The position numbers and the translations under genes are program-made. The notes below the pieces were generated by a model that was not told the origin of the DNA, made no database searches, and saw only the letters and a program-made list of their open reading frames with translations. A stretch of 64,000 nucleotides of DNA from Macrostomum lignano. Taxonomy: Eukaryota. The DNA lies in contig NIVC01000114.1 of the NCBI GenBank assembly GCA_002269645.1, positions 682,001-746,000 on the forward strand, written 5' to 3'. Below are positions 631-58,700 of the stretch, one piece after another (position 1 is the first letter of the stretch; the number at the start of each line of letters is the position of its first letter).

Positions 631-3600
631 CTACACCTGCAACTGCTCCGATACGGGATTTCGCGGTGCCAACTGCAGCGAAAACATTGACGATTGCGCT
701 TCCCCGTCCAACCCCTGCTCCAACGGTGGCGTCTGCATTGACGGAGTGAAAAATTACACATGCCAGTGTCTGGCTGGCTACTCCGGCAGGAACTGCACGC
801 TGGATGAGCCTGACTGCGGTCCGAACCCGTGCCACTACAATGGCACCTGCTTAGAGAGAAGCAACCAGGCTCTGTATGGCAATGCCAGCCTGCCTTACCC
901 GTTTGATGGCGGGTTCAACTATTCAGTGGCTGCTGGGTTTGTGTGCCTCTGTCCGAATGGTAAGTTCTCTTCTGAGTTCAGTTAGCTTCCGATATTCACT
1001 GAGTCCACTCACTGCCGCTTGTTCACAATTTAAACAATTTGCGACAAAATAAAAAAATTGAAACTAACACTTTTGAGCCTTACACTATAGGCTTGTGTAA
1101 GCGACCCTTAATATCACAGTGTGCTCGCAACCTGGAAAAACCCTTGGAAAAAACTTAAAAATGTTTTTAAAGGCAAGTCATTGTAGAATCCGTCGACATG
1201 TGGCATAATAAATTGAGTTTTTTAAAGTCGATGAAGCTACCTTGGCCAAGCGAACACATATCGTAGTGTTATTTGATCGTTGCATTAACATTTAATTAGA
1301 AGTCGGTCTAAGTGCTTTAAGGAATACTGACTTCTAACGGTATGAATCATATGTTATTTAAACTTACCACTATCACTTATCACTTAGCGTTACAAGAATC
1401 GCTAAAGTGTCATTGCAAACAACTCCCTAGTGACTCTTACGAGTTTTTAACAACTCAAATGACTGTAATAAGATAAAGATGCGAGTTTTGAGTCACGAGC
1501 ACATCGAATGCTTTCGAAAATTGTTAAAACAGTCGCGAAAAAGTCCTCCAAAAGCCATCGTGTTAGTGCTTAACTTTATGATAACTTCAGTAGACTAAAT
1601 AGAGTTGCTATAAGTTATAGTATTTGTCATGCTATCTCAGCCTAGAGACATCCAAACTCAGCCAGTCCCATTCCGCAATGCGTTTTTTTGGTTCGAGCTA
1701 GTCGACTTTTACCATAGACATGCTTCTTAAGGCCATGCTATCTCAGCCTGGGACATGCAATCTCAGCCAATATAGATTTCAATTGCAAACAGATCTCAAT
1801 GCTATCATTTCAAACAAATAGCAATGAATGAACGCAGCAAGAAAAGTCAGTAAGGGTACGCAACAACGCTGAGATTGCATGTCCCAGGCTGAGATAGCAT
1901 GGCCTTAAGAAGCATGTCTATGGTAAAACTTGACTGGCTTACGTAAAAATCGCACTGTCGAGATGGGCTGGCTGAGTTTGGATGTCTCTAGGCTGAGATA
2001 GCATGACAAATACTATATTAATGCGAAATGCGATTCTAATTTAAAAAGTAACGCAGCAGCGATTTACACACAAGTCGCTGATTCTACAGCAACTTAAGCA
2101 CGCCCAGAGTCGTTTCAAAGTTGCAGACAATAAAACGCCTCAACTTGACTCTTGAAGGACTTTGACGACTTGTACCGTGACATGTCGTCGTTTTGGAGTC
2201 GTCTAGAGTCACTCCTTTGCTTTTTTACCCGTGTTCCCTGCAACGTGTCCACCTGCACTCAAATTACTATCCAATATAGTTCATTTTCTGCACCAAAGGC
2301 TCATCTGGAAATGACTGCTCCATCAACCCGAACGACTGTCTGGACCCGGCCACCAACCGCAGCGTGTGCGCTCACGCGTCGAGCTGCACGGACGGCCTGG
2401 CCTCATTCACCTGCCACTGCCTGCCCGGCTACGAGGGCCCGACCTGCTCAGTCGACATCAACGAGTGCGAGCGGTTCGGACAGCCGTGTCAGAACGGAGC
2501 CGTCTGCAAGGACCTGGTAGCGGATTATGCCTGCACCGGCTGCCCCGCTGACTTCGGAGGCAAAAACTGCAGCGTCAGACTGACTGGCTGCGACTCCAGC
2601 CCGTGCCAGAACAATGCTACTTGCGAGCCTCTGCTTCTTCGCGAGCTGCCGTCACCTGCTCACGGCTACCGCTGCACCTGCAAGCCTGGCTGGTCTGGAC
2701 CGCAGTGCAACGAGACCACTCTGGCGTCATTCAACGGGACGTCCAGTTTCAGCGCCAATTTTAACACAACAGCTGACTGCACCTTCGAGCTGTCGTTCCG
2801 CACGAGCCTCGCCCACTTCGATCTGGTCCGGCTCTCGTCTCACTGGGGAGACATCCGAGTCGGCGCTCACAACTCCAGTCTCGTGCTGTTGTTCTTCAAT
2901 GCCTCGTCGTCTTTGATTGGTCGAGCCGATTGGCCAATCAGCGACAGCTTGGCCTCTACTGATTGGCTGACGCTGTCGGTATCGCAGACCAATGGCAGTG
3001 CGACATTGAGTCGCAGTGAGTCAGGAGTGAGTCAGCTGCCTCGAGCACAGCTGGTCGACGGACTGTCGGACTCATTCAAGCCGAACAGTCGAATGTCAGT
3101 TCATGTCGGCGGCGAGAGCGAATCCGGCATCGACGGCGGTGGCTTCCGCGGCTGCGTGAGAGACCTGCGGCTCGTGACGAACAACTCGACATTGGTCGCT
3201 ACGGAGACCACGGCGGAGTCGAGCAACGCCACCTGGGGAGTCTGCAGTCGGTCGGTGCAGTGCGGCAGCCCGTCGCCTTGTGAAGCAAAGACGAGCTCGA
3301 TGTGCTCAGATGTGTGGAATGACTTTGTGTGCCACTGCGCTGCGGACTTCGGAGGCCGGCGCTGCTCCGTTGAGCTTCCATCGTTCTCACTGGGTGTGGG
3401 CGGCAGCGTGTCATCAGCGAGCTTCGCGTCTGCAGCAGGTGTGTCAAGTGTGTATGGCGGAGACTCGTGGACGATTGAGCTGAGGCTGGTGACTTTGTCT
3501 CGAGGAGCGTTTCTGCTGCTGCTGGGCGACCCGAGCGACTCGGCGACCACTCCGAGACTGCTCGCTATGGTCAGTGTCTTTTGTAGAAAACCAATGAATC

Positions 3601-6600
3601 CATTTATAATTAGTCAGTTTATGTATTACTGACTTTTACTATGTGAATCTTACCGGTGGCTTTTCCGTAAACAGCGTGTCTCGAAGTCTTGTTTGGATTA
3701 ACGTCAAACAAAGCACATTGATATTTGTTTATTTATTTGCTAGTCCTAAGCGTAGTTTTTCAAAAATATTCGTCCCTATGCTTGAATTGTCCAAGAGCAA
3801 AACTGCATTGACTATCAGTTGAGCCATTTACTAACTTTCAGATTGACAACAATGGCCGTCTGTCCGCCCAGTTACTGCACAGCAACGGCTCCGACATCGC
3901 AGCGCTGACGTCCTCAGTCTCGGTGGCCACCGGCAGCTTCGTCTCCGTGAAGATCTCCGTGTCGATATCGGGTCGCTCGCTGTCGCTGTCAGTGTCATCT
4001 TCAGTCAGGTCGGCATCGCTGAGCAGTGCGAGTCCGCTGCCGCAGCTCTCAGGCCAGCTCATCATCGGCGGCTTCAGCGGCGCCAAGCCAGCCCCGGCTC
4101 CGCCGTTGAGCGGCAGCATCAGCAGATCAAAGAGATCGCTGCCATCCAGTGTCGCCGCAGCTGTTGGCAATGACACCACAGCATTTCGCGGCGTGCTGAG
4201 CTCAGTGAGACTCAACGGTGACACGCCGCTACTGCTGGGCCCTGTGCCCACCAGCTTGATTGACAGCCTGCCAACAGCCGTTAGCGCCGAAAACTCCACA
4301 GAAGTGACCACTGGGGCTCGCACTGAGAGCGTCTGCGTAGCTTCCACACCCTGCCAGAATGGAGGGAACTGTTCGGATGTGTTTTACAACTCCTACTCGT
4401 GAGGATTTGCTGATTGCTTCTTTGTTTTATTGTAGAGAGTCATTTGAGCTCCCATGACCTCCCCACTAAGATTTGGTTTGGTAGTAATTTTCCATTTTTA
4501 TTCGTAGGTGCAATTGCACCGCTGGATGGCGAGGACGCAACTGCTCAGACCGAGACCTGTGCCACCCATCCGCCGGCTCGTGTCCGAACGGCACCCAGTG
4601 CGTCAATTTGGATGGCTCCGGTGGATTTGAGTGTGAGAGAATTTTGCTTGCATTAATCTGTGATTTTTATCATTCCTTTAAATTCTCAAATCTCCAAAAA
4701 TTCCTTTTAAGAACGTCATTTCAAACAACTCGCTAGTGAAGCGGCTCTTGTGACTTTTTAACGTTTAAATTCGATTGAGATGTGACTGTTGCGTCACAAG
4801 CGCTTAACTTTTGCTAGAGATGTGACTCTAATTCATCAAGATAATCTACTCAGTGGTTTTTACAGCAAATCTAGCGCGCGCATCAAATACGACTGAATCT
4901 ACGGCTTAAAAGTCGTTTCAAAGTCGCAGACAATAAGACGCCTCAAATTAACTCTCCTATACGACTTTTTGACCACTTTTGGCGATTTGTACCGTGACAT
5001 CTCGTCGCTTTAGAGCAGGGGTCGACAAACTTTTTATTTCAAGGGCCAGGTAAAGAAGCTAGATCATTGCTGCTGGCCAGACAAGCGCGTCAAAGAGAGG
5101 GAATGGGGGAGAGAGAAGAAGAAAGGGAGGAGAGATGAGATAGGATATGTGATTAGGAGAGGAGATGAGAAGAGACAAACCTTGAGCGAGCTGGATCGCT
5201 ATTGTAAAGTTTCAAAGAACCCGAGGTCCGGATAGAGAGGCTTCGCGGGCCGGAGTTTTCCGATCGCTGCTTTAGAGTCATCTACATGTAGAGTCACTTC
5301 TTTCCTACAAGTATTTTACCTGTGTTACCTGCAGCGACTCTGTGGCGACACACAAGTTACTGTTGTCACGTTTGACACAAGTGACCATCAATTCCCCATT
5401 GCCAGGTCGCGCGGCTGCCACATTCGGCAGCAATCTGCAGTCGCCGCTCAGCACCAGTCAGCTGATTCTGTCCGCATCCAGTCTAAATGAGTCCCTAGCA
5501 ACGGTTACCGGGTGGGCTCGAACCCGTCAGTCGGACTGTCAGCTGTTGTCAGTGTCCAGCGGAGGTCGTCAGCTGACTGTGGGCTGCAGCTCCGGTCAAC
5601 TGCAGGCCGGCCTTGACAACCAGACAGCGTTGGTAGCGGTTGGCATAGCAACGGGTTTACCGTTCACCTTTAGCGTAAATTGTTCTGCGGGCTCACCTCT
5701 CAGCCTGCAGGTATCTGTCAATAGCAGCGACTCGGTCTCGGTGTCCAGCAAGTCTGCCCTAGCAACCGACTTGTTGCTAGACTCCGCTGCCAAGGTTACC
5801 TTGGGCGGCATCAAATTCAAAGGTTGCCTTGACAACGTGCGACTCAACGGGCGCCTGGCACCCCTAGCGAATCGATCCCTGCTTCCTAGCGGAGCTGCCG
5901 GGTTCGAGTGGGCCTCGGAGTTAGTGTCCGCGCCTATGATCGGTTGTCATGGCGACCAGGTGTGCCAGACTACTGTCAACGAGCGGACAGAGAATGTCTG
6001 CCAGAATTCTGGCAGGTGCACCGATCTGTGGAACAAGTTTGCGTGCAGCTGCACTGATGGCTTCTATGGCGACACTTGCTCGGCGAAACTTGGCGCCACT
6101 GCGAGCGTCTCCACGGCTGTCATCATCGCCGTATCCGTTGTGGGCCTCGTCATCATCATCTCTGTTGGTGAGTTAATGTTGATGCAGCTGAAACTGCAGT
6201 GACGGACACTTTCTGGGACAGAAACGTCAGTGAAAGACGCTTCAGTGACAGACACTTCACTGACAGACACTTCATTGATAGACACTTCACTGACAGACAC
6301 TTCACTGACAGACATTTCACTGACAGACACTTCACTGACAGACACTTCACTGACAGACACTTCACTGACAGACACTTCACTGACAGACACTTCACTGACA
6401 GACACTTCACTGACAGACACTTCACTGACAGACACTTCAGTGACAGACACTCCAGTGACAGACACTCCAGTGACAGACACTCCAGTGACAGACACTCCCG
6501 TGACAGACACTTCATTGACAGACACTTCACTGACAGACATTTCACTGACAGACACTTCACTGACAGACACTTCACTGACAGACACTTCACTGACAGACAC

Positions 6601-9600
6601 TTCACTGACTGACACTTCACTGACTGACACTTCACTGACAGACACTTCACTGACAGACACTTCACTGACAGACACTTCACTGACAGACACTTCACTGACA
6701 GACACTTCAATGACAGACACTTCATTGACAGACACTGCACTGACAGACACTTCATTGACAGACACTTCATTGACAGACACTTCACTGACAGACACTGCAC
6801 TGACAGACACTTCACTGAAAGACACTTCACTGACAGACACTTCACTGACAGACACTTCATTGACAGACACTTCATTGACAGACACTGCACTGACAGACAC
6901 TTCATTGACAGACACTTCATTGACAAACACTTCACTGACAGACACTTCACTGACAGACACTTCACTGATAGACACTTCAGTGGTAGACACTTCACTGATA
7001 GACACTTCACTGACAGACACTTCAGTGGTAGACACTTCACTGACAGACACTTCACTGACAGACACTTCATTGACAGACACTTCAGTGGTAGAAATTTCAC
7101 TGACAGACACTTCAGTGGTAGACACTTCACGGACAGACACTTCATTGACAGACACTTCACTGATAGACACTCCCGTGACAGACACGCAAACAACAGCTAT
7201 ACAGAATTGTATTTACAGAATGACACAATTTTCTTTTTACTTTTTTCTTGGCAGAAGAGTTTCTTAATTTACCCACGTGGTAGAGAGTTTAAGTTATAAA
7301 TTATTTAACTTTGAGCCTTGTTAGCCCCTTCAGTATGTGTCAGCCTGCCTATTGTGATCGTGCTTCTTGGCATGCAATGCCAAGAGTTATAAATTAATTT
7401 GATATCTCATTTTATACTGTGCCAACTTTTAATTAGATATGTTCTCAGCAATCTGCAGCAAAGCGGGTTGTAGCCTAGTGGTTAGAGAGTCGGAATCACG
7501 ACTGAAAGATTGGGGGTTCGATTCTTGGACCACTCAAAACAATTTATCAATCTGCAGAAATCAGCTATAAATCTGCAGTAAGCGGTTGTCAATCTACAGT
7601 AATCAGTTATCAATCTGCAATAATCAGTTATCAATCTGCAATAATCAGTTATCAATCTGCAATAATCAGTTATCAATCTGCTGTAATCAGTTATCAATCT
7701 GCAGTAATCAGTTATCAATCTGCTGTAATCAGTTGTCAATCTACAGTAATCAGTTATCAATCTGCTGTAATCAGTTATCAATCTGCAGTAATCAGTTATC
7801 AATCTGCTGTAATCAGTTGTCAATCTACAGTAATCAGTTATCAATCTGCTGTAATCAGTTGTCAATCTACAGTAATCAGTTATCAATCTGCAGTAATCAG
7901 TTATCAATCTGCTGTAATCAGTTATCAATCTGCAGTAATCAGCTATCAATCTGGAGTAATCAGTTATCAATCTGCAGTAATCAGCTATCAATCTGCAGTA
8001 ATCAGTTATCAATCTGCAGTAATCAGTTATCAATCTGCAGTAATCAGTTATCAATCTGGAGTAATCAGTTATCAATCTGCAGTAATCAGCTATCAATCTT
8101 CAGTAATCAGTTATCAATCTGGAGTAATCAGTTATCAATCTGCAGTAATCAGCTATCAATCTTCAGTAATCAGTTATCAATCTGGAGTAATCAGTTATCA
8201 ATCTTCAGTAATCAGTTGTCAATCTTCAGTAATCAGTTATCAATCTACAGTAATCAGTTATCAATCTGGAGTAATCAGTTATCAATCTTCAGTAATCAGT
8301 TGTCAATCTGCAGTAATCAGTTATCAGTCTGCAGTAATCAGTTATCAATCTGCTGTGATTAGTTATCAATCTGCAGTAATCAGTTATCAATCTGCAGTAA
8401 TCAGTTGTCAATCTGCAGTAATCAGTTATCAATCTGCAGTAATCAGTTATCAATCTGCAGTAATCAGTTATCAATCTGCTGTAATCAGTTATCAATCTGC
8501 AGTAATCAGTTATCAATCTGCTGTAATCAGTTATCACTCTGCTGTAATCAGTTATCAATCTGCTGTAATCAGTTATCACTCTGCTGTAATCAGTTATCAA
8601 TCTGCATTAATCAGTTATCAATCTGCAGTAATCAGTTATCAATCTGCAGTAATCAGTTGTCAATCTACAGTAATCAGTTATCAATCTGCAGTAATCAGTT
8701 ATCAATCTGCTGTAATCAGTTATCAATCTGCTGTAATCAGTTATCAATCTGCAGTAATCAGTTGTCAATCTACAGTAATCAGTTATCAATCTGCAATAAT
8801 CAGTTATCAATCTGCTGTAATCAGTTATCAATCTGCTGTAATCAGTTATCAATCTGCAGTAATCAGTTATCAATCTGCAGTAATCAGTTGTCAATCTACA
8901 GTAATCAGTTATCAATCTGCTGTAATCAGTTATCAATCTGCTGTAATCAGTTATCAATCTGCAGTAATCAGTTGTCAATCTACAGTAATCAGTTATCAAT
9001 CTGCAATAATCAGTTATCACTCTGCTGTAATCAGTTATCAATCTGCTGTAATCAGTTATCAATCTGCTGTAATCAGTTATCAATCTGCAGTAATCAGTTA
9101 TCAATCTGCAGTAATCAGTTGTCAATCTACAGTAATCAGTTATCAATCTGCAGTAATCAGTTATCAATCTGCTGTAATCAGTTATCAATCTGCTGTAAAC
9201 AATTATCAATCTGCTGTAATCAGTTATCAATCTGCAGTAATCAGTTATCAATCTGCAGTAATCAGTTATCAATCTGCAGTAATCAGCTATTAATCTGGAG
9301 TAATCAGCTATCAATCTGCTGTAATCAGTTATCAATCTGTATTAATCCACTTCCTGAACCGGTCTTATGCAAAGTTTAAAATTCTAAGCCGGCAAACTCT
9401 ACTAAAAGCAAGCAAAATCGTAAAATGACTTTATTGTTATTATTTAATTTTTATTTCAACCCGAACTTCCAGTTGCAGTGCTGCTTTTCAAGTACGTGCA
9501 GAACCGTCGCAAAGAGTCTGGCACCTACGGTCCGTCCAAGGCTGAGAGTCGGAGCAACGCCCACGCGCAGGCCCAGCCACCTGTGAGGCCACCGCCTGAG

Positions 9601-9615
9601 GAGCGCCTCATTTGA
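631..9615 (+). CDS. crb: Crumbs ortholog, 3' part (EGF repeats - 3 LamG domains with interspersed EGF - TM - FERM-binding/PDZ-binding tail); 5' exons lie upstream of the window
   Basis: Exons with GT-AG borders and continuous frame: 631-959, 2299-3569, 3842-4398, 4508-4632, 5406-6167, 9473-9615. Contains the Crumbs-type EGF with a long insertion ([30 protein letters not shown]), three LamG domains and a TM segment ([23 protein letters not shown]). The tail [18 protein letters not shown]...[12 protein letters not shown] carries the GTY and ERLI motifs diagnostic of Crumbs. Confidence 0.93.
1400..2245. repeat. Unclassified interspersed repeat in a crb intron (second copy ~4710-5340), here interrupted by a foldback MITE
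   Basis: Shares blocks with 4710-5340 (caaacaactc.ctagtga; gtcgtttcaaagt.gcagacaataa.acgcctcaa; tgtaccgtgacat.tcgtcg; tagagtcact). Boundaries are approximate. Confidence 0.55.
1616..2017. mobile_element. Foldback MITE with long TIRs and TA flanks (Tc1/mariner-type target)
   Basis: TA|TAGTATTTGTCATGCTATCTCAGCCTAGAGACATCCAAACTCAGCCAG ... CTGGCTGAGTTTGGATGTCTCTAGGCTGAGATAGCATGACAAATACTA|TA. The arms stay inverted for roughly 150 bp and there is no ORF. Confidence 0.85.
5016..5269. mobile_element. Non-autonomous hAT (Buster-like) element
   Basis: Exact 8-bp TSD CTTTAGAG at 5008-5015 and 5270-5277 (central TA). Imperfect TIRs CAGGGGTCGACAAAC and GTTTTCCGATCGCTG. Confidence 0.8.
6225..7186. repeat. 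15-bp minisatellite (GACAGACACTTCACT)n in the last crb intron
   Basis: Direct tandem periodicity; it produces the spurious (DTSLT)n and (SEVSV)n ORFs. Confidence 0.95.
7463..7541 (+). mobile_element. tRNA-like SINE head (family 2)
   Basis: A box TAGCCTAGTGG and B box GGTTCGATTC; homologous to the 5' end of the SINE at 60627. Confidence 0.7.
7545..9345. repeat. 21-bp minisatellite (AATCAGTTATCAATCTGCAGT)n in the last crb intron
   Basis: About 1.8 kb of tandem 21-mers with point variants and no unique spacers. Confidence 0.95.
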
Positions 9616-11340: not shown

Positions 11341-11650
11341 GACGTCAGCGGTGCGATGTGGGAGCCGTTGCTGTGCAGTAACTGGGCGGACAGACGGCCA
11401 GAGTGATCGATCTGAAAAGATTTAAACAAAGCTTAAAAGAAAAACATCTTGAAATCCACTAAGAGTACCAGAATGGACACTGACCGTAGCGAGCAGTCTC
11501 GGAGTGGTCGCCGAGTTGCTCGGGTCGCCCAGCAGCAGCAGAAACGCTCCTCGAGACAAAGTCACCAGCCTCAGCTCAATCGTCCACGAGTCTCCGCCAT
11601 ACACACTTGACTCATTTGGGAAAGAAGCAAAACTTGCTGACGATTCTCGC
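11341..11650 (-). pseudogene. Orphan fragment of a Crumbs-like paralog (LamG2 exon end, intron, next exon start)
   Basis: The minus strand encodes [53 protein letters not shown]|gtcagt...tttcag|[24 protein letters not shown]. Homology stops abruptly at both ends. Confidence 0.8.
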
Positions 11651-11689
11651 TAGTATCAATAGATACCAAAGAGCGCCAGCATCAGGGGA

Positions 11690-15196: not shown

Positions 15197-18100
15197 TCAG
15201 AAAAACACCTCCTGTGGACAAGGCGGCATTCCGTCCGGTCTCAGGTGTCCAACTCGAACACCGGTTGGGCCGTTCAAGTCGAATCTGTCCCAAACCCACG
15301 GGCTTCGATGCTTCTCGTCGTGAGCTCGTCGGAGCTTCAGGAAAACAAGAATACCTGCAGGTGAAAATGATTTGAACAGAATAACGAAGCCTCGCTCGTT
15401 AGTTATGTAAAACAACGGACTCACCAATGCAGGCGCCAATGATAATGATCGTGGATGAAACAATTCCTGCGATCAATGCACTCGCACTTCTAGGCGAGTC
15501 TTTATTTGAATCCTTGTCAGAACACGTAGGACCTTGCCACCCATCTGCACACTCACATCTGTAACACATTGGAGTCAGATGCGGTGATAGAATACAATTT
15601 GGGTTACTACTCGTATTTAGCTACCTTAACTAAACTTACCTATAGGTGACAAAGAAAATATTCAAACACGTAGCGCCATTCTGACAAGATTTTGAAGTCT
15701 CACAAGGAGTTTCAGCTTCAGTGATAAAAGCGACTCCTTCTGACTTGCTGGCAACAATGGCTGCTGGAAGCCTGTCGGTCCAACTAAAATCGTTTTGCAC
15801 GAGGATCAACGCCCAATCCGAATTAATTTTAAGGGCACCAATAACACCTCGAAACGCAGAAATATTGGATGAAAGAAGCCGAGCAACGGCAGTTGGCAGT
15901 GACGCCAGCGATCGTCTTGATCGCCTGCTGGGATTAAACGATGGAGCCGGAGCTGGCTTGGCGCCGCTGAAGCCGCCGATGATGAGCTGGCCTGACAGCT
16001 GCGGCAGCGGACTCGCACTGCTTAGCGATGCAGAACTGACTGAAGATGACACTGACAGTGACAGCGAGCGACCCGATATCGACACGGAGATATTTACGGA
16101 GACGAAGCTGCCGGTGGCCACCGTGTCTGGGGATGTCAAGGCTGAAATGTGGGAGCCGTTGCTGTGTAATAATTGGGCGGACAGACGGCCTTCGTGATCG
16201 ATCTGAAAATATTGAAACGAACATTGACTTTTAGAGATGAAAAAATGAATATAATACAATCCACAAAAGAGCACCATAATGGACACTGACCGTAGCGAGA
16301 AGTCTCGGAGTGGTCGCCGAGTCGCTCGGGTCGCCCAGCAGCAGCAGAAACGCTCCTCGAGACAAAGTCACCAGCCTCAGCTCAATCGTCCACGAGTCTC
16401 CGCCAGACAAACTTGACGCATTTGGCAGAGAAGCGAAACTCGCAGACGATACAAGTCCGCTTATGCCGAACGAGTACTGTGGAAGCAGCACGGAGCAGTT
16501 TTTGCCTCCGAAGTGAGCGAGGCAGCCGGTGCAGGCATAATCCGCTACCAGGTCCTTGCAGACGGCTCCGTTCTGACACGGCTGTCCGAACCGCTCGCAC
16601 TCGTTGATATCGACTGAGCAGGTCGGGCCCTCGTAGCCGGGCAGGCAGTCGCAGGTGAAACTTCTGACACCGTCGGTGCACCTGCCGCCGTGCTGGCACG
16701 GGCTCGACGCGCAATCCTCGATCTTGGAGCTGCAGGTGTCGCCTTGGAAGTCGACGCGAGAGCAATCGCAGGTGAACCTGAAATGATGACGTTGATTTTA
16801 TTTCGCTAGATTTGGCTTTTGTTATCTGAATTGTACACAATTGGCAAACATGTTTTCATTGTGCTTGCGGTTTTTAATTAGTGACATTATTTTACTAAAA
16901 ATGCCTGTTTTCAAGCCTCACATACATATAAATGTGTGATTTAAACTGATGTAAAAACTTCTGTTCTGACCAGCAATGACCTAAATCAATACGTTTCCCC
17001 AATGCGTTCTTTCTTATATTATCAGACTCAACGATTGCAATAATGTGAGAAGCGTTTAGCAGTAACTTTCCGTTAATAGTATACACCATTTTACCTCCTA
17101 TTTTGAAAAAAAGTCTTGTTCAAAAGAAACTAGCAGTACTTCAATTCAAACACTAAGAAATATCAGTCCTCGCGGAAATTCAATTCAAACAAGGTCCCTT
17201 TTTATTGAAACAGAAGACATTTAATTCAGACTGTCTGTGGCCAAAATTGTCCACAAAGTGACGCCCATGCGCAGATTTAAAATTCAAAAGAAACAAAGTT
17301 ACATTCTATTCCAGCAAAGAGATAAAACACAGCATATTATCGAAAATAAGAGTAAAATAAAAAACAGGAACATGACAAGAAGGACAAGACAAGATAGAAA
17401 AATTGGAGCAATGGAAGAGGTCAAAGATAAAATTGACAACACGACACGAACCATCGCCACTCATCCAACATCCAATCGTATAGAGCATTAAGCAGCGGCT
17501 CTGCTCTCTGTTTGGTGGGTCACTGGGTCCGACAGAAGTTCAGGTGAGTGCTCGGGAATGTGTGAATGTCTGCTTACCCACAATATTATATAATATACAA
17601 ATTTATATAAGTAACGCAGAAGCAGATCATGCGATGAAGACATCAGGTTTTTATCCTCACTTTTAGCGATTGGCAGCTTGAAAGCGAGGTATTATTGCCA
17701 TGTTGTATAGCAGCTCGCGTTTTCGTGTCGGCTTTGTGACAACTTAACAAATGCACAAAAATGCTTTAAAGCACGATGGAAACACTCGGAAATCTAACTT
17801 CCAGGTCCTTAAAATACGTATTAATAACTATATACATGTATGATAGAAGCGAACCTAGTACCTGTATGCCACTAAGAACCCAACCCCGAAGACGCTGTCT
17901 AGAGCACGCACACTCAAGAACCGAACCACAAGGCAACTTCAGCACCTAGAAGCATCTAACCCCAATCAATCGACCCTAAGCTCAAACCCAAAGCACCCAA
18001 AAAGAACTCAACCGCAAGCACCCAACCACAACCCATCCTCAAGCACCCAACCACTATGCAACCCCAAGCATCTAACTCAACAAGGACGCAATCGTAACCC

Positions 18101-24100: not shown

Positions 24101-26920
24101 TAGGAGCTCTCTCCCCCTTGTTTCCGTCAAGGAGTTCTTGATTCCCGAGTTCTAAGACCCGTGTGCGTTAGCGTCTGAACTGAGCGCCCGACTGCGTTTA
24201 TCGAATCCGTTCTTATTGGTCTGTCTGAGACCCGACCAAGCCAGCCTACGAGAGACTAACTCAGCCCTCCCTGTACCAACCAAGCCCGGCAGGTGCTGCT
24301 GACGAGACGCCTAGTACGTTGAACTGCAAATCTGCACGCTGTGCTGTGTTCGTTGACTTCGTTAATTTCGTTCCGACGGGAAGCTCACCTCACCGAAGGC
24401 CGAGACCTGAAGGAACTGGTGGCAGCACTACCTACGCTACTAAAGTTAAGAAGGCTTCTAAGTGAGAGGACGGAGCCCAAGTCACTGCGCTGTACAGCAG
24501 GACAACCACAGGTACAACACTTGCTTAAATTACAGCTTGGACGACTTCGAATATAACTGACCAAAATGATGACAATAAATAAATTGAAGACGCAATCGAT
24601 TGCCTTACAAAATGGACAGATGCATGCGAGTACACCTCTGAGCTGCTTCATTAATGGATTCAATTTATTAGCTCGCATCTACCCAAAGAGTATTCAGAAG
24701 ACCTCGACAAAACTTTCACTAGCCGTATTTCACTGCTAGCGCATTGCCGCAATAACCATGCATCAGGAAACCACTTTCTTTTTGACGGTCACGCAGCTCT
24801 GGCAGATGTTAAAATGTAAAAAACACAACGACAATCGGCAAGCACAAGAGAAATTGCGGCAGGGATCCCGTTAGGAAGCTAGAAAAGCTTCGACACCAAC
24901 TGAAAGCTTTGGCGTCTCGCTAGAGGTGTCTCACTACCTGCTTACTAACCTGATGTTTCAGTATGTCCTCCTTGGAGCGCTGCAATCTAATTCACTAGAA
25001 TGACAATCTCGATGGTATTGGCACCGCAAAGGATCGAGCTACTATGTGTCCCACAAGAACATTCTGGATACTGAGAAAGCTATTCGATCAGTATCATTAC
25101 TGCAGTTCAGTGGTGTCCAGCCACTGGCAAAGCAAAAGAGATTGTACGTCAGCTGAGCCTGAGTGAATCAATTAGAGATGCAGACGCTAATTTTTTCGAA
25201 TACGTGGCAGGTATATGTTTGTTAGAGCTAGCCATCACTACTCAAAGGAGTTTCACGCCATCCAATGAGCTGCTACTATCTGTTCTAGCCGACATAAAAA
25301 TCGACGGTTCTTCCACTTTTTTATGACTGAATTGACTGAACTTTGATAGCTTGCTTTTTCCGCTTCAAAGGCAGCCTGGGGATCATCTCTCAGTTTCAAA
25401 CCTGCCAGCAGTTTCCAAATTCTCGGCATCGACATAATGCTCTATTTGAAGCAATCAGTTCAGTGGCATTGGAGAGACTTTCAAATCTACGCTACCAAAC
25501 ACACTGCGACATTCAGCACCGAATTCTGCATCGACAGACGCAGCGTCAGGTAAAAAAGTAGCCAGATTCAATTAATGAGCACTAAGGCAATCGTGAGTTA
25601 TCCAATAATTTAAAGAATATTTCAATGCCCTTTATATTGTTTCTGCATATACTCGTAGTTCCCAATTAAGCTTTTAGTGAATTCTGATACGCTTTAATTT
25701 AAAATGCACTTAAGACAGACCTTTGCCTCTAATTTCTGCGAAATCCGATTCAGCGTAAGTTTTAATGCGAAAATCAATTGAAATAAACAAGTTTTTAATC
25801 GATTCCGACATCTAGAAAAAGTTGATTCGATATTTCTGTCTTGACAAGTTTATGTAGGCCAAAAAAGCCTTTAATTCCAGGTTAATATAGAATTCTATGC
25901 TACACTTCACCCGACTGTAAAATGGGTGCATGCATTAGCTGGAGTACGAGCTAATTGAGGGTGCGTGGTGACCCCCCCCCAGTCCTTGAACTGAACAGCC
26001 GTAAGCAGCCTTCGGACGCGCCGCGCAATAGCTGCGGCTGAGCTGTCGGTTCACTATTAATATTCCTTATACTATCATTATTCGTCGAAAGATACTAAAT
26101 AAACTAATACCCTAAATATCGGAAAGGAATGAATTAAAACATTAATCAGTTCTGGCGGGATGGGTTCTGTGAGATGTGGATGGGTTTTGTGAGATGATGG
26201 ATGAGAGATGGTGAGACTATGGAATGATTACTTTTCTCAAATCAATTTGAAGCCTTGGTAAAGGTTACTGTGAGTTTTTGAATAACCATATTTTTAAGTT
26301 TGAAAAAATATTGTTAAATTTTATCCATTGAAGAAAGCCTTTACTATCCAAATGAATTGAGCTATTAAGTCGTATAATGCGATTCTGATAAAAAAGTTCA
26401 AAAAACATTCTTTTGTTTCAAATTTTGATTTACAGCAGGTCACTCACCTGTGTAGCCGGGAGCGCAGCTGCAGTGATACCAGGGGCTTGCGTCTGTGTTG
26501 CTGCAGGTGGCTCCGTTCAGGCAGGGATTTTTTGAATTTTTAGTGCCATCTGAAGTTGTAGCACAAAAATTGATTCTACTTTTACAATGTTCACCAGTGT
26601 ACCCTGCAGTACACAGACACGGAGGAGTGCTTGCCGTCACAGCACCCGGCCAGCAAATGCCGCCATTCTCGCAGTCACCCTCGCTGCAGGCGGCTCGCCT
26701 CGCCCGCGCCAATTCGCCCGCGTCCTCATCCGAACCTTCATATTGCAAATCAGTGGGAAATTTATATTTAGAAGCTGCAATTCTCCTAACAGCCACTTCA
26801 GCTACCTTATAACCCCAACTCACCTGCGGTTAAATCTTCTGAAACGGATACACACGAAACTCGATGCGTAGCCAGCGTCAGAAAAAGAATTAATATCGGC
26901 AGTCGAATGTTGGACGACAT
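15197..26920 (-). CDS. Crumbs-like paralog E: signal peptide, ~13 EGF, 1 LamG, TM, QEVFF tail
   Basis: Exons in transcription order: 26920-26824 (MSSNIRLPILILFLTLATHRVSC signal), ~26774 or ~26735 to 26448 (acceptor ambiguous), 22056-21864, 21251-21024, 18901-18557, 16777-16291, 16202-15640, 15558-15425 ([21 protein letters not shown]), 15354-15197 ([51 protein letters not shown]). The frame is continuous. Confidence 0.85.
17870..18460. repeat. Degenerate AC-rich (CAACCACAA/AAGCACC) intronic repeat
   Basis: Loose copies of the unit seen at 19470-20635; related short copies at ~20880-20940 and ~37690-37800 lie in paralogous introns. Confidence 0.6.
19470..20635. repeat. ~25-bp AC-rich minisatellite (CAACCACAATCCAACCCAAAGCACC)n
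   Basis: Tandem periodicity; source of the spurious LGWVVVG/CGWVL ORFs. Confidence 0.9.
21565..21852 (+). mobile_element. 3' end of an I/LOA-group LINE (CCHC knuckle region and 3' UTR) in an intron of gene E
   Basis: Encodes a degenerate [13 protein letters not shown](S/C)P...RLT.LGP motif and ends in TGAGTCAAGTCAA. Homologous to 38473-38812 and 27590-28250. Confidence 0.65.
23549..24609 (+). mobile_element. Solo-LTR-like element (~1.06 kb)
   Basis: TGTAGT...TTACA termini, TATA-like CTATAAATAG at 24094-24103, AATAAA at 24574 and internal tandem enhancer-like repeats. No clear TSD was found. Confidence 0.55.
23856..24103 (+). promoter_or_regulatory. Cluster of AP-1, CRE, MEF2 and E-box consensus sites ending in a TATA/MEF2 element
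   Basis: TGA(G/C)TCA at 23856, 23900, 23926; TGACGTCA at 23965, 24036; CTA(A/T)4TAG at 23912, 24047, 24094; CACGTG at 23861. Confidence 0.5.
25895..26060 (+). mobile_element. SINE family 2, 3' half
   Basis: cttcacccgactgtaaaatgggtgc...aattgagggtg...ccagtcct.ga.ctgaacagccgta...gctgagctgtcggt matches 60750-60885. Confidence 0.7.
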
Positions 26921-33804: not shown

Positions 33805-36800
33805 TCAGAAAAACACTTCTTGCGGAACGGGCGCCACACCGTCATATCTCAGGTGTCCAACACGAACTCCTGTGGGCCCGTCCAGATCTAAGGTGGCCCA
33901 GTATGATTTACTTATCAGCTTCTCGGCTGCCAGTTTCTTGTGCCTCACGACAATAAAAATACCTGTTCATTACAAGAAATACAGGTGGCATGACGAAAAA
34001 TTAAAAAAGCGAAAGCGAACTTCGACTTACCAACAAACGCAGCGATGGCAGCAACTGCTGCGGCGCAACTACCAGCGATTAATGCCAGAGAAGCATTATT
34101 GCCTATCTCCTGCTTTGTTTGCTTTGCAGAATCTGCTTTGTTGCATTTGGCACCGTGCCAGCCAGCTGAGCACTGGCATCTGCAAACATGGTGCGTGCGA
34201 TTATACAGTTACTAAAATATACACTGGAAGATGGATAAATTACCTACTACATGCATAAAAAAACTTACTTGTAACTGTTAAAAAATGTATTCGTGCATGT
34301 TGCCCCATTCATGCATGGAGAGTCATACTCGCATACGCTCTCGTGGACAATGCCAGTGACAACACCAACAGATTCGGTGGCAATGATAGCATGAGGCCAA
34401 TCATCCAGAGAAAGGTTTCTACTTGAATCTAGAACCAACGGCCAAAGAGAGTTAACTCGAGGAGCTGAAATTAATCCACGGAATGCAGTGATATTTGCAA
34501 GGCTTGACAGTAGCAGACCAACAGATCTCCTTGATCTGCCCCGGCGGCTCGACAATGGATCTGGAGCTGCCCGAAGACCGCTGAAGCCGCCGATGATGAG
34601 CTGGCCTGACAGCTGCGGTAGCGGACTCGCACTGCTTAGCGATGCCGACCTGACTGAAGATGACACTGACAGCGACAGCGAGCGACCCGATATCGACACG
34701 GAGATCTTCACGGAGACGAAGCTGCCGGTGGCCACCGAGTCTGAGGACGTCAGCGCTGCTATAAGGGAGCCGTTGCCGTGCAGTAACTGAGCGGACAGAC
34801 GGCCGGAGTGATCGATCTGAAAAATTCAAGTAAAACCAAACATAAAAATATCTTGAAACCTACAAAGGAGTACCATTACGCTCTTAAGAACACTGACCGT
34901 AGCCAGCAGTCTCAGAGTGGTCGCCGAGTCGCTCGGGTCGCCCAGCAGCAGCAGAAACGCTCCTCGAGACAAAGTCATCAGCCTCAGCTCAATCGTCCAC
35001 GAGTCTCCGCCGTACACACTTGACACACCTGCTGCAGACGCGAAGATCGCTGATGACACGTTGCCGCCCACACCCAGTGAGAACGATGGAAGCTCAACGG
35101 AGCAGTTTCGACCTCCGAAGTCCTCAGCGCAGTGGCACACAAAGTCATTCCACACATCTGAGCACATCGAGCTCGTCTTTGCTTCACAAGGCGATGGGCT
35201 GCCGCACTGCACCGACCGACTGCAGACTCCCCAGGTCGCGTTGCTCGACTCCGCCGTAGTCTCCGAGGCGACCAATGTCGAGTCATTCGTCACGAGCCGC
35301 AGGTCTCTCACGCAGCCGCGGAACCCGCCGCCGTCGATGCCGGATCCGCTCTCGCCGCCGACACGAACCGACATTCGACTGTTCGGCTTGAATGAGTCCG
35401 ACAGTCCGTCGACCAGCTGTGCTCCAGGCAGCTGACTCACTCCTGACTCACTGCGACTCAATTTCGCACTGCCATTGGTCAGCGAGACCGACAGCGTCAG
35501 CCAATCAGTAGAGGCCAAGCTGTCACTGATTGGCCAAGCGGCTCGACCAATCACAGACGATGAGGCATTGAAGAACAACAGCACGAGACTGGAGTCGTGA
35601 GCGCCGACTCGGATGTCTCCCCAGTGAGACGAGAGCCGGACCAGATCGAAGTGGGCGAGACTCGTGCGGAACGACAGCTCGAAGGTGCAGTCAGTTGTTG
35701 TGTTAAAATTGGCGCTGAAACTGGACGTCCCGTTGAATGACGCCAGAGTGGTCTCGTTGCACTGCGGTCCAGACCAGCCAGGCTTGCAGGTGCAGCGATA
35801 GCCGTGAGCAGGTGACGGCAGCTCGCGAAGAAGCAGCGGCTCGCAAGTAGCATTGTTCTGGCACGGGCTGGAGTCGCAGCCAGTCAGTCTGACGCTGCAG
35901 TTTTTGCCTCCGAAGTCAGCGGGGCAGCCGGTGCAGGCATAATCCGCTACCAGGTCCTTACAGACGGCTCCGTTCTGACACGGCTGTCCGAAGCGCTCGC
36001 ACTCGTTGATGTCGACTGAGCAGGTCGGGCCCTCGTAGCCGGGCAGGCAGTGGCAGGTGAATGAGGCCAGGCCATCCGTGCAGTTTGACGCGTGAGCGCA
36101 CACGCTGCGGTTGGTGGCCGGGTCCAGACAGTCGTTAGGGTTGATGGAGCAGGTGTCTCCGTAGGTACCTGTTGCAGTTAAATGAAAATTAATTTAGGTT
36201 GGAATTAATTTAGGATGTACCGGATCTCCTCACCATTTTGGCAGAGACAGACGAAACCGGCAGCCAGCGCGTAGCGGAAGCTGCCGTTGAACGGTGCCGG
36301 CAGCGGTGAGTTTCCATACAGAGCCTGGTTGCTGCGCTCCAGACAGGCGCCACCGAACTTGCACGGATTCGGCGAGCAGTCCGGCACGTCATCGGAGCAG
36401 GTCTTTCCCGAGTAGCCGCTGAAGCAGCTGCAGCTGAAGTCTCTGAGCCCGTCAGTGCAGGTGGCGTTGTGGCTGCACGGGTTGCTGGCGCAGTCGTCAA
36501 TGCGGCTCTGGCAGTTCGGTCCGTAGAAGTCGGTGGCAGAGCAGTTGCAGGTGAACCTGAATCGAAAAATTGAGGTAAGGTAGCACGCTTTAAAATGCAC
36601 AAAAATGGAAATAACAGCATAGATTATTTTTTAACTTCTTCCAACTTTCTTCCTATTTCTTATATAGGTAAAACCAAAAGACACTTGTACACTAGTTTAA
36701 AAGAACGTTGGTTAAAAAATTCGGCTATCCAGGACCACCAGCTCTGCTGCAACAGCTGTTGTAATAGTGAGCAAACTCGGCAGTTCAGAATTATTGATTT

Positions 36801-48411: not shown

Positions 48412-51400
48412 TCAGAAAAACACCTCCTGTGGACACGGCGGCATTCCGTCCGGTCTCAGGTGTCCAACTCGAACACCGGTTGGGCCGTTCAAGTCGAATC
48501 TGTCCCAAACCCACGGGCTTCGATGCTTCACTTCGTGAGCTCGTCTGAGCTTCAGGAAAACAAGAGTACCTGCAGGTGAAAATGAATTTAAACAGAATAA
48601 CGAAGCCTCGCTCGTTAGTTATGTGAAACAACGGACTCACCAATGCAGGCGCCAATGATAATGATCGTGGATGAAACAATTCCTGCGATCAATGCACTCG
48701 CACGTCTAGGCGGTGAGTCTTGTTTTGAATCCTTGTTAGAGTCCGGCTCAGAACACGTGGGACCGTGCCAACCAGCTGCGCACTCACACCTGCAACAGTT
48801 TGGACTCACGTGCGATGATAAATGACTATTTTATTAGCTATTGCTAATAAACTTACCTATACGTGACAAAGAAAAAATTCCAACACGTAGCGCCATTCTG
48901 ACAAGATTTTGAAGTCTCGCAACGAGTTTCAACTTCAGCGATAAAAGCGACTCCTACTGACTTGCTGGCAACAATTGTTCTTGGAAGCCTCTCGGTCCAA
49001 GTGGAATCGTTTTGTTTGAGGATCAACGGCCAAACTTCATTGATTCTGGGAGCAGATATAACACCTCGAAACGCAGAAATATTTGATGAAAGAAGCCGAG
49101 CAATGTCAGTTGGCAGTGCCGCCATGGATCGTCTCGATCGCCGGCTGGGATTAAACGATGGAGCCGGAGCTGGCTTGGCGCCGCTGAAGCCGCCGATGAT
49201 GAGCTGGCCTGACAGCTGCGGCAGCGGACTCGCAATGCTCAGCGATGCCGACCTGACTGAAGATGACACTGACAGCGACAGCCAGCGACCTGATATCGAC
49301 ACGGAGATCTTCACTGAGACGAAGCTTCCATTGGCCACCGAGTCTGGGGACGTCAGCCCTGCGATGAGGGAGCCGTTGCCGTGCAGTAACTGGGCGGACA
49401 GACGGCCATCGTGATCGATCTGAAAAGATTTTAAAGCAAAAACTGACTTTAAAACACCTTGAACATCTACAGAGGAGCACCACAAGGACACTGACCGTAA
49501 CTAGCAGTCTCGGAGTGGCCGCCAAGTCGCTCGGGTCGCCCAGCAGCAGCAGAAATGCTGCTCGAGACAAAGTCACCAGCCTCAGCTCAATCGTCCACGA
49601 GTCTCCGCCATACACACTTGACACACCTACTGCAGACGCGAACCTCGCTGATGACACGCTGCCGCCCACACCCAGTGAGAACGATGGAAGCTCAACGGAG
49701 CAGTTTCGACCTCCGAAGTCCGCAGCGCAGTGGCACACAAAGTCATTCCACACATCTGAGCACATCGAGCTCGTCTTTGCTTCACAAGGCGACGGGCTGC
49801 CGCACTGCACCGACCGACTGCAGACTCCCCAGGTCGCGTTGCTCGACTCCGCCGTGGTCTCCGTAGCGACCAATGTCGAGTCGTTCGTCACGAGCCGCAG
49901 GTCTCTGACGCAGCCGCGGAAGCCGCCGCCGTCGATGCCGGATCCGCTCTCGCCGCCGACACGAACCGACATTCGACTGTTCGGCTTGAATGAGTCCGAC
50001 AGACCGTCGACCAGCTGTGCTCGAGGCAGCTGACTCACTCCTGACTCACTGCGACTCAATGTCGCACTGCCATTGGTCAGCGAGACCGACAGCGTCAGCC
50101 AATCAGCAGAGGCCAAGCTGTCACTGATTGGCCAAGCGACTCGACCAATCACAGACGATGAGGAATTGAAGAACAACAGCACGAGACTGGAGTCGTGAGC
50201 GCCGACTCGGATGTCTCCCCAGTGAGACGAGAGCCGGACCAGGTCGAAGTGGGCGAGACTCGTGCGGAACGACAGCTCGAAAGTGCAGTCAGCTGTTGTG
50301 GTGAAATTGGCGCTGAAACTGGACGTCCCGCTGAATGAAACTAGAGTGGTCTCGTTGCACTTCGGTCCAGACCAGCCAGGCTTGCAGGTGCAGCGATGTC
50401 CGTGAGCAGGTGACGGCAGCTCCTGAAGAAGCAGCGGCTCGCAAGTAGCATTGTTCTGGCACGGGCTGGAGTCGCAGCCAGTCAGTCTGACGCTGCAGTT
50501 TTTGCCTCCGAACTCAGCGGGGCAGCCGGTGCAGGCATAATCCGCTACCAGGTCCTTGCAGACGGCTCCGTTCTGACAAGGCACTCGCTCGCACTCGTCG
50601 ATGTCGACTGAGCAGGTCGAGCCCTCGTAGCCGGGCAGGCAGTGGCAGGTGAATGAGGCCAGGCCGTCCGTGCAGCTCGACGCGTGAGCGCACACGCTGC
50701 GGTTGGTGTCCGGTTTCAGACAGTCGTTCGGGTTGATGGAGCACGTGTCTCCGTAGGCTCCTGTTAAAAAGTATTTTGCAAGTGGTAATAGCTGGCAGAG
50801 TTATTAGTGACCCCGATTTGTGTAACTTTCCTCTTATTAGCTCCGAGCGTAGTATTTTTTGGGTGTTCTATGCTTACTAGTGAATTTTTTTTTTATTAGC
50901 ATATACGACAGAAAAGAGGTTTTGAAATATTTTACTTTGGTAGTTTTCAGTAGAAGCCAATAATTTAACGTGATCTACGAAGACCTTTTGCTGAAAGTCT
51001 GACCAAATCTTGGGTTCAAACAGACTAAATATATGAAACTCTGTGATTTTCAAGGAAAAGCATTACCGTAGGCAAAGTATGCAAAATTCGATGCTATAAA
51101 GTTGGATGCAGAGCCGTTTTGCAGCAGCGAAATTGATGATAATTTAGCGATTTAGCGAATGGTACAATGACTGTACCTAAGGTAGTTTGTTAATACAGTA
51201 TTTGGGTCGTTTCAGCTTTTGGGAATTTTAAATTACGATAATAATTTCTAGTCTAAAAAGTTTATTTTTCTCAACTTAAGTCTTAATTTTGCTAGTTTTA
51301 AAGACGGCAATTGTTTTTGTTTAACACATCGACTCCATTTTAATTCATGGTGTTGGTGTCAACAGATTTATAATATACCTAATATTTAGATTGCGCTATT

Positions 51401-55775: not shown

Positions 55776-58700
55776 TTAATACAAGCGTTTGAACAGGTAT
55801 TTAACCATCTTCCCTGTTTTGTGAATTTTGGGGTACCTCTTCCGTGTATTACTTGTGCCATTTTTAGGCATATACACGATATCCGGTTTTGCATATGATT
55901 CATCGTCAGTTGCAGCATCACGATGAAATAGCTCCACTCTGGGCCTCGGCTTTGGCGCCTGTTGACCCGGCTGTGAATCATCTTGCAAGCCGCTGTTAGT
56001 TGCTGCTTCAGCGGGAGTCTAAAATATAATTGCTACTATAGTGGCTTAAGCATGTACGAGTATTATTAGCTTAGTCTGTTTTTGTGTTCCTTGCAAAAAG
56101 CTCAATACTTTTAAAAGTAAACAAATACTGCTAAAAGTTTGAGTAGACGATTCTACATACCGGGTAGTCATATTCACTGGTGGCAATTGTACTTTCCTGT
56201 CAAAGAAACGGTTGAAAAAAATAATAAAAATTGCCATAAATCATTTTGTCTTAAAATAACAGCATATTAAGCGGAAGTCGTACCTGTAGTCTGTCAGCAA
56301 AAGCATAATTTGAATGAGACAGGTCTACTGACTCTTCACCGATCGGTCTCTGTCATAAGATAAAAACATTGGGGGAAAATTAAGCAACGTGCTCAAAATT
56401 CATCCGAAAATTTCTGACTGCTGAATGTAAAAGTGAAAGCGATGGAGCGGAGGTGTTGGAAGACTAAAATTTTGGCGCCCTTTTTACACCAGCTGTAGCG
56501 CTCTTCTTCCACATTTTAGCGTTCCTCAACAACTACTTTGGCTATGGCGCCCCTGGTGCTGGCGCCCCTGGTGCTGGCGCCCCTGGTGCTAAAGCCCCTG
56601 GTGCTAAATCCCCTGGTGCTAAAGCCCCTGGTGCTAAAGCCTGTGGTGATAAAGCCCTGTCAATCGAAGAAGTTAAATCGTAAAAAAGCATTAGATGAAA
56701 TTTTCGCTCACATTTTCATGACAGCAACGATTTCTAAATCGACGCCTGGCCAATAGGATCAGAAACACAGCGGAGAGAAATGTTGCTGGGATGACGATTG
56801 CAATGACGATAACACGGGTTTTCGATGTAGAAAGTGCACCTTCAGTCACTTGCGACGTAACTGAAACTTTGTTTGAGGTGTGCAAAGCAGATTTGGCAAA
56901 ATTATTTTCGAGTAAACTTGATATTCATTGCTTTGCTCGAAAAGAGAATGGTATGTCGACTATTTTCAACACAATGAAAGTTAAAATTCTGATCGGTGTG
57001 AAATCTATAGAGCATTCTAGGTCGTAAACATTTAAGATTAAACGCTCTAAAAGAAAATTAATCGCAATGCGAATCAAGATTTTCTGGCCAGTAACACACT
57101 ACCCCCTACTTTCTCGAAAAAAACAAATTTTCTCTGTTTACTGGTTCAAAAGGCACACTAAGAAGGTACCAGCTCCCTACAGTGCAATGCAATGATAAAC
57201 AACAGTCCATTATGCTTGGCCTGGGTTAGATAGTGTGAAGTCAGTAATGCATGAAAACCAAAGCAGAGAAGAGGGTTAGGCATTATACTACTTTTCTGAG
57301 ACTAAAACCCGTCGTTCATTATCGTTGGAGAATAAAGAGAAGAGCAGGAGAAAGCAGTTAGAGAGAAGAGCCTATTTGTAAGGGACATGGCTTGGGTTTG
57401 CAAAACTGCTACACAAAAATAGAAATGAGATAATAGCATGCAAAGGCTCATGCAGAAAAAGGCGTACTTGTGAATAGTGATTCTTCACAGCCAGGTAAAC
57501 ACACAGAGCCGGACGCACGCGAAAAGCTAAACGAACTGTTGAAGGGCGATGGAAGGTCCGAACTGTTGTACAATGAGGCGTTGCTTTTTTCGAAACAGCA
57601 GAAACCTTCTCCGCAAGGATTGAGGTCGCAGTCCGGAATGTCCTTGGAGCAGTCCTTGCCGTGGTAGCCCGAATGACATTCGCAGCTAAAAGTTGGGAGT
57701 ACATGTATGTAGCTCGTACCAGTGGGTTACTCAGCCATATACTTTATTCACGATCGAAACATGCAGAAAGGCAACACCAGCGAACTTACACAAAATTGTT
57801 GTAGAAAATATCGTGACACGTCGCTCCGTTCTCACAAGGCTTGAAACGCTCGCAGACTTTCTCAGCCAGTTTTCCAAGAACCACATTTGTTGAGCCGCTC
57901 GGTTTAATTGCTCCAGGAAAAATATCTTGTAGCGTTGCTGCTGGGGAGCTGAGAAGTAAAGCTGTGATTCCATTGATCCTGGTCGAGCCAATAATACCTC
58001 GAAATGCAGTAACATTGGCTACAGATGAAGATAAATTAGGATCCCAAACGGATCTTCTTGATCTGTCATTGCGGCTCAAAGGCGGAGCCGATGCTGCCGT
58101 GGCACCGTTAAAACCGCCGATGATGAGCTGGCCTGACAGCTGCGGCAGCGGACTCGCACTGCTCAGCGATGCCGACCTAACTGAAGATGACACTGACAGC
58201 GACAGCGAGCGACCCGATATAGACACGGAGATCTTCACGGAGACGAAGCTGCCGGTGGCCACCGAGTCTGAGGACGTCAGCGCTGCGATATCGGAGCCGT
58301 TGCTGTGCAGTAACTGGGCGGACAGACGGCCAGAGCGATCGATCTGAAAAGATTTTAACAAACTGAAAGATCGCACTAAATTCAGAAAAAAGAACCATTA
58401 AGGACACTGACCGTAGCGAGCAGTCTCGGAGTGGTCGCCGAGTCGCTCGGGTCGCCCAGCAGCAGCAAAAAAGCTCCTCGAGACAAAGTCACCAGCCTCA
58501 GCTCAATCGTCCACGAGTCTCCGCCAGACACACTTGACGCATTTGGCAGAGAAGCGAAACTCGCAGACGATACAACTCCGCTTATGCCGAACGAGTACAG
58601 CGGAAGCAGCACGGAGCAGTTTTTGCCTCCGAACTCAGTGGGGCAGCCGGTGCAGGCATAATCCGCTACCAGGTCCTTGCAGACGGCTCCGTTCTGACAC

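Follow-up and report, generated by a model that had tools for sequence, protein, structure and literature searches.

A predicted furin-type convertase site in an inserted LamG loop of Crumbs and Crumbs-related proteins of Macrostomum lignano

Notch, a type I receptor with EGF repeats, undergoes a furin-type cut at site S1 that leaves it as a non-covalent heterodimer. We analysed a 64,000-nucleotide stretch of DNA (the window) from the flatworm Macrostomum lignano, which holds a tandem cluster of genes for EGF/LamG type I membrane proteins: crb on the forward strand, followed by paralogues E, D, C, B and A on the reverse strand. All five complete copies of the LamG2 domain in the window carry a basic motif, R-S-[KR]-R-S, in a long loop. 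We predict from the sequence, with a probability of about 0.5, that the motif is a furin-type convertase site at which these proteins are processed into non-covalent two-chain receptors. That it is a functional convertase site in some form, whatever the outcome of the cut, we consider probable.

In laminin alpha2, a furin-like protease cuts the LG3 domain at the sequence RRKRR, which lies in a loop of unusual length (PMC2755686), and the resulting pieces of 300 and 80 kDa remain non-covalently bound to each other (PMC3156650). The arrangement in M. lignano resembles this in that a multibasic motif lies in a long loop unique to one LG domain, where a cut would fall inside the beta-sandwich. However, the laminin site is found in the D–E loop, early in the domain, whereas the motif described here lies in the loop leading from GG to FxG(C), at about position 100 of the 126 positions of the domain profile. 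The two loops are not the same, and the M. lignano site is an analogue of the laminin alpha2 site, not a homologue. The proteins differ as well: laminin alpha2 is a secreted matrix protein with an observed cleavage, whereas those of M. lignano are type I membrane proteins for which cleavage is predicted.

A second comparison is offered by FAT1 and Drosophila Fat, giant type I adhesion receptors with EGF and LamG domains that are cut in the secretory pathway to give non-covalent membrane heterodimers; in FAT1, separate shedding of the ectodomain is possible after this processing (PMC3953070). These are cadherin-repeat proteins, however, and there is no homology with the M. lignano loop. Notch differs in that its S1 cut lies in the HD domain of the negative regulatory region and not in a LamG domain, and in that this cut is tied to later ones by ADAM proteases and gamma-secretase. 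With the Crumbs proteins themselves (Drosophila Crb, CRB1 and CRB2), the crb gene shares EGF repeats, three LamG domains, a transmembrane (TM) segment and a GTY...EERLI tail, but LamG2 of M. lignano has diverged so far that no Crumbs of another species could be aligned with it, and the tails of B–E are different. The class of two-chain proteins matured by a convertase is known; what would be new is its extension to the Crumbs family and to a different LG loop.

The LamG2 loop and its basic motif

In every copy the motif is flanked by ...QLIIGGF(S/N)G on one side and AFRG(V/L/I) on the other. Translation bore out the original prediction, which had placed RSKR-S in crb and RSRR-S in E, D, C and B between the IIGG and AFRG strands of LamG2, in its coordinates, residues and strand names (Table 1). 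The motif conforms, as had been proposed, to the full proprotein convertase consensus R-X-K/R-R, which is present as RSKR, RSRR or RTKR in eight of eight paralogue lineages. Extra arginines occupy P5–P8 in E, C and D. P1' is serine throughout and is followed at P2' by Leu, Val or Met in the window and by Leu or Ala in relatives outside it; by a rule that we took from PMC3281273 and from general knowledge, such a P1', which is not bulky and hydrophobic, is favourable.

Since E and C are recent duplicates, the window contributes four independent lineages and not five. The four further lineages are M. lignano paralogues on other contigs, which keep R-[ST]-[KR]-R-S in loops that differ in length and sequence. 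In one of them, P0008, the serine at P3 is replaced by threonine (RTKR), which fits R-X-K/R-R with a free X. Two other M. lignano gene models from outside the window, P0003 and P0010, which belong to one paralogue, leave the LamG2 exon 16 residues past RSKR-S (...AAMPSG) and join a cytoplasmic-tail sequence directly. They reflect either faulty annotation or alternative transcription that omits the EGF, the TM segment and the final strands of the LamG.

The spacing between GG and F-[RK]-G is 33–38 residues in LamG2, compared with 10 in LamG1 and two in LamG3 (LGGIKFKGC). Because it is far longer than its equivalents in the other two domains, the loop is an insertion specific to LamG2. It is rich in Pro, Ser, Ala and Gly (and, taken together, in Ser, Thr and Pro), and the copies differ by indels and share little identity apart from the motif. 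The description of the loop as hypervariable thus holds for its length, indels and low identity, but the divergence is not peculiar to it: the whole 3' part of the genes, beginning with the loop, is strongly diverged. Directly before AFRG, an N-x-S/T sequon is found in all five copies of the window and in most other paralogues, with a loss in P0004/P0009. The hydrophilicity minimum across the whole domain falls on the motif in E, D and B.

LamG2 of crb matches the Pfam profile PF02210 (Laminin_G_2) with 28.3 bits (cut-off 22.9), residues 41–192 aligning to profile positions 3–125 of 126 on both sides of the loop. The matches of the three paralogues that were scanned (P0005, P0006 and P0007) are interrupted at profile position 100, immediately ahead of the motif, and the P0005 score of 19.6 bits is under the cut-off. 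The strand following the loop reads AFRG and then V, L or I, and LamG2 contains no cysteine at all, unlike LamG1 (GFRGC) and LamG3 (KFKGC); the absence of the FxGC cysteine had been pointed out correctly. The conserved C-terminal disulfide of LG domains (FxGC ... C), described in PMC2755686, is kept in LamG1 and LamG3 and is missing from LamG2. AlphaFold2 models reached a mean pLDDT (predicted local distance difference test score) of 40.4 with the five-copy alignment and of 43.6 with 14 rows that included extra paralogues, LamG1 and LamG3. A profile search of the PDB with the LamG2 alignment returned chance matches only. With hhalign, LamG2 was matched to LamG1 at 5% probability and to LamG3 at 1%, and these alignments were not used for strand mapping.

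The motif is on the extracellular (lumenal) side of the membrane. A signal peptide is present in P0005, the protein of gene E, and in all copies a TM segment and a cytoplasmic tail follow 3' of the motif. In crb it is the last exon, encoding the end of the TM segment and the cytoplasmic tail, that places LamG2 outside the cell. In B–E the motif-bearing LamG is separated from the TM segment by only one or two EGFs and is thus membrane-proximal, in agreement with what had been stated.

Constraint on the motif and its specificity

In a self-BLASTN comparison, crb 3836–4137 shares 87–92% of its nucleotides with B, D and E, and the alignments stop at 4137–4141, at the motif. The 79 codons upstream form a homogenised block with a synonymous divergence (dS) of 0.11–0.30, and comparison of crb, D and C over the preceding exon gives a dS of about 0.08. 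Starting with the loop and continuing to the 3' end of each gene, synonymous sites are saturated (dS above 1 to infinity) and nonsynonymous divergence (dN) amounts to 0.5–0.6. The switch from low to saturated dS falls in the middle of an exon, at most about 15 codons from the motif, and the 15 codons from GGFSG to the motif are already diverged and include an indel.

The five codons of the motif show 1–5 synonymous differences per pair of copies, with a dS of 0.3 to infinity that is mostly saturated. AGA and CGA are used at P4 and P1, TCA and TCG at P3, AGA and AGG at P2, and TCG, TCT and TCC at P1'. The sole amino acid change across the copies of the window is the conservative exchange of Lys and Arg at P2, and the flanking loop codons show a dN of 0.2–1.0 together with indels. 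Because the codons have diverged synonymously in every pair while a single conservative change is seen in the residues, the comparison indicates purifying selection on the protein sequence of the motif, which lies in an old and diverged part of the gene.

When the loops were shuffled, R.[KR]R arose with P = 0.0015–0.11 per loop. The product over the eight lineages is about 1e-15, a figure that assumes their independence and so overstates the case, and shows the scale.

Two further explanations of the motif were considered. A signal acting at the nucleotide level, such as a splicing enhancer or a recombination signal, was ruled out by the synonymous codon differences found in every copy. The synonymous divergence at the motif also ruled out that it is the mere tail of a gene-conversion tract.

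Among the coding frames of the family in the window, R.[KR]R is confined to the five loop sites and one other place; the number expected by chance is 0.06–0.44 per protein. The other place is in gene E, where R-x-R-R follows the signal peptide and a short acidic stretch and stands directly in front of the first EGF. P0006, P0007 and P0008 have the same N-terminal arrangement, with RTRR or RSRR followed by AACSEGDC. This second motif looks like the site at which an N-terminal propeptide is removed by a convertase. Both types of R.[KR]R motif are conserved and stand at places typical of convertase sites.

The genes have a mosaic history. crb 2315–4110 pairs with 34552–36173, 49155–50765 and 58084–58780, and dS between crb and the paralogues is about 0.08–0.3 over the EGFs, LamG1 and LamG2 up to two thirds of its length. 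These 5' parts of low dS suggest gene conversion or a recent 5' duplication.

Predicted cleavage and alternative explanations

As type I membrane proteins, crb and its paralogues would pass their EGF/LamG ectodomain through the trans-Golgi network. There the motif would be displayed on a flexible, glycosylated insertion loop of approximately 35 residues, between the IIGG and AFRG strands of the LamG beta-sandwich. A cut after the last arginine would give two chains. The large N-terminal one would comprise the EGFs, most strands of the cut LamG and, in proteins that have it, LamG1; the small C-terminal one would comprise the last LamG strands (from AFRG on), one or two EGFs, the TM segment and the tail, with LamG3 in addition in crb. 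Since this cut would fall inside a folded sandwich and LamG2 has no cysteine, the two chains would most likely be held together non-covalently, and their dissociation may be a later, regulated step. Kexin-like convertases are general in Metazoa. The small, flexible flanks and basic core of the site appear to match the concept of a 20-residue furin motif (PMC3281273).

Several points weigh against cleavage and chain association. Taken by itself, the four-residue pattern is not required for cleavage by furin, nor does it suffice (PMC3281273). As the structural models are too poor to judge the exposure of the loop, we infer it from the insertion and its composition. The site could be masked by O- or N-linked glycans nearby, and the conserved Ser/Thr at P3, which furin does not need, hints at an additional or different constraint. 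Furthermore, the conservation extends only to old paralogues within a single species. When 1.84 billion representative proteins were searched exhaustively with a profile, no LamG2 relative from another species was retrieved; the ten matches are nine M. lignano members of the family and one unrelated repetitive protein. In a word-indexed search, too, the closest database proteins to LamG2 are all from M. lignano. A search with the C-terminal 421 amino acids of the Crumbs protein found crb itself and one unnamed EGF protein, and a search with the TM segment and tail gave no match. We found no report of convertase cleavage of any Crumbs, or of work on the Crumbs of M. lignano, in a literature search of limited coverage, which agrees with the original view of the site as unfamiliar in Crumbs.

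The motif might instead be a basic island with no part in proteolysis, serving as a patch that binds a glycosaminoglycan, a lipid or a partner protein, or as a glycosylation-related signal formed by the Ser/Thr at P3 and the Ser at P1'. LG domains commonly bind heparin and other sulfated ligands through basic surface residues, and the heparin affinity of laminin alpha2 is altered by furin processing (PMC2755686). This explanation would also account for features that the minimal furin consensus leaves unexplained, namely the conserved residues at P3 and P1', and the loop has the Ser/Thr/Pro-rich composition noted above. A binding patch, however, needs no exact R-x-[KR]-R spacing, which eight lineages have kept amid drifting neighbours. 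The domain contains no other conserved basic cluster, and a motif of the same type is found a second time within the family at a classic propeptide junction. We regard a non-proteolytic role as unlikely.

Cleavage might also be followed by release, the second outcome that had been put forward, with the N-terminal chain leaving its membrane stub as a soluble or matrix-bound ectodomain and possible ligand. The membrane-proximal position of the cut LamG in B–E would suit such shedding: only about 3–4 strands would stay on the stub and, with neither a cysteine nor the conserved LG disulfide in LamG2, nothing covalent would span the cut. But documented cuts within folded extracellular domains give non-covalent heterodimers (laminin alpha2, PMC3156650; FAT1, PMC3953070), and true shedding of FAT1 required a second protease, ADAM10 (PMC3953070). 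The strands that follow the cut (AFRG..., ...PL.L...) are, moreover, conserved and core-like. Release of the ectodomain appears to be the weaker of the two outcomes and less likely as the default, and we rate it as distinctly unlikely.

That the motif has no function, and was kept by shared ancestry or by its position at the edge of a 5' gene-conversion tract, is very improbable and largely refuted by the codon data: although the alignments of crb with B, D and E run from 3836 through the upstream block and end right at the motif, the ten to fifteen codons between block and motif have already diverged, with indels, the motif shows synonymous differences in each pair, unlike the converted block (dS 0.1–0.3), paralogues on other contigs keep it in very different loops, and the shuffle probability over the eight loops is vanishingly small if these are independent.

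A more elaborate version of the two-chain receptor, which we consider a long shot, would be modular. The cleaved N-terminal chain, near-identical among the genes, would dock by beta-strand complementation on stubs that are specific to each paralogue (ERLI versus EVFF tails), and chains might be exchanged between paralogues. This idea arises because the predicted cut adjoins the junction between an N-terminal side that evolves in concert (dS about 0.08–0.3) and a saturated C-terminal side. That the junction falls at the predicted cut could, however, simply reflect the stopping of conversion tracts by an indel-rich loop.

The gene cluster and what processing would mean for Crumbs

The protein encoded by crb has EGF repeats, three LamG domains, one TM segment and a short tail (GTY...EERLI) with a FERM-binding motif and ERLI at its C-terminus, and since this tail ends in EERLI, it is a genuine Crumbs. 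B–E lack a Crumbs tail: C, D and E (as well as A) end in QEVFF, and the tail of B reads ...RRRFRNRCC.... They are Crumbs-related paralogues and not Crumbs proper, so that their inclusion under the heading of Crumbs in the original prediction has to be given up. The QEVFF-type tail that E, D, C and A have in place of ERLI may be a different PDZ-type ligand. The introns of the window are of the eukaryotic GT..AG type. P0005, which is annotated and full-length, bears out the splice junction equivalent to that at the crb intron (...RLLAT/IDHEG...).

Table 1. Coordinates of the LamG2 motifs, loops and genes discussed in the text (positions in the window; a hyphen within a motif marks the predicted cut)
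Feature	Position	Strand	Remarks
crb RSKR-S (P4–P1')	4124..4138	+	Codons AGA TCA AAG AGA TCG; translated
E RSRR-S	15909..15923	−	Further R before (PSRRSRRS); translated
D RSRR-S	34523..34537	−	Multibasic (SSRRGRSRRS); translated
C RSRR-S	49126..49140	−	Translated
B RSRR-S	58050..58064	−	Translated
Relative P0004/P0009, RSKR-S			Outside the window
Relative P0006, RSRR-S			Outside the window
Relative P0007, RSKR-S			Outside the window
Relative P0008, RTKR-S			Outside the window
crb IIGGF...AFRG segment	4061..4192	+	36-residue loop; N-x-T sequon 4169–4177
E IIGGF...AFRG segment	15846..15983	−	38-residue loop; NIS sequon 15858–15866
D IIGGF...AFRG segment	34475..34597	−	33-residue loop; NIT sequon 34487–34495
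C IIGGF...AFRG segment	49063..49200	−	38-residue loop; NIS sequon 49075–49083
B IIGGF...AFRG segment	57996..58124	−	35-residue loop; NLS and NVT sequons, the one before AFRG at 58008–58016
Gene E second R-x-R-R, ...DEDAGELARARR-AACSEGDC	26695..26706	−	Between signal-peptide region and first EGF
crb exon	2280..3570	+	EGFs, LamG1, EGF, N-terminal third of LamG2; part of homogenised block
crb intron	3571–3841	+	Acceptor AG 3840–3841
crb exon	3842..4398	+	C-terminal two thirds of LamG2, start of next EGF; donor GT 4399–4400
crb last exon	9472..9615	+	TM end and cytoplasmic tail ...GTYGPS...PPPEERLI and stop; tail end 9598–9612
Paralogue E	about 15.2–26.9 kb	−	One LamG
Paralogue D	33.8–40 kb	−	Two LamG
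Paralogue C	48.4–53 kb	−	Two LamG
Paralogue B	56.7–59 kb	−	One LamG
Paralogue A	61.8–63.6 kb	−	Without LamG2 region
Shared QEVFF C-terminal tail, E, D, C, A	15200–15214, 33808–33822, 48415–48429, 61790–61804	−	

Two members of the cluster are incomplete in the region of interest. In gene A (reverse strand), an EGF exon (63327–63641) runs straight to an exon with a LamG3-like domain and the TM segment (62400–63161). The gene has neither the LamG1/LamG2 region nor the convertase motif, and the related database protein P0006 has both. A truncated paralogue fragment at 11341–11644, probably a pseudogene remnant, includes the last part of the upstream exon, the intron that follows and some 70 nt of the LamG2 exon before a 15-bp array cuts it off short of the loop. 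Its identity to the intact copies is 84–92%.

Repetitive DNA is found within and between the genes. The last intron of crb, which separates the TM exon from the ERLI exon, is filled by tandem arrays at 6217–7185 and 7544–9347, with a 15-bp unit in 65 copies and a 21-bp unit in 86 copies. Minisatellites at 11678–12288 and 29524–30225 have related 15-bp units, and a third, at 19473–20612, has a 25-bp unit and lies where GC skew is strong (about −0.3 to −0.4). Between D and C, at about 41573–45889 on the reverse strand, a piecewise scan revealed a retroelement with a gag-like open reading frame containing a SAP domain, and with RVT_1 and RNase H. A weak match to a tyrosine recombinase (Phage_integrase) marks it as DIRS-like, and it is flanked by direct repeats of 165–166 bp (41573–41737 and 45724–45889) that are 99.4% identical. 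An array with 20/40/60/100-bp periods (40460–41318) adjoins this element.

Crumbs is a central determinant of apical polarity, and little is understood of the biology of its large ectodomain. The two-chain receptor proposed here is a well-supported prediction from sequence, made in one species and analogous to the laminin alpha2 mechanism. If it is true, Crumbs and its paralogues at the cell surface of M. lignano would be two-chain receptors that are matured by a cut inside a LamG domain. Force or a binding partner could then detach their ectodomain, as in Notch, FAT1, adhesion G protein-coupled receptors and SEA-domain mucins, and a search for equivalent loops in other Crumbs proteins would be justified.

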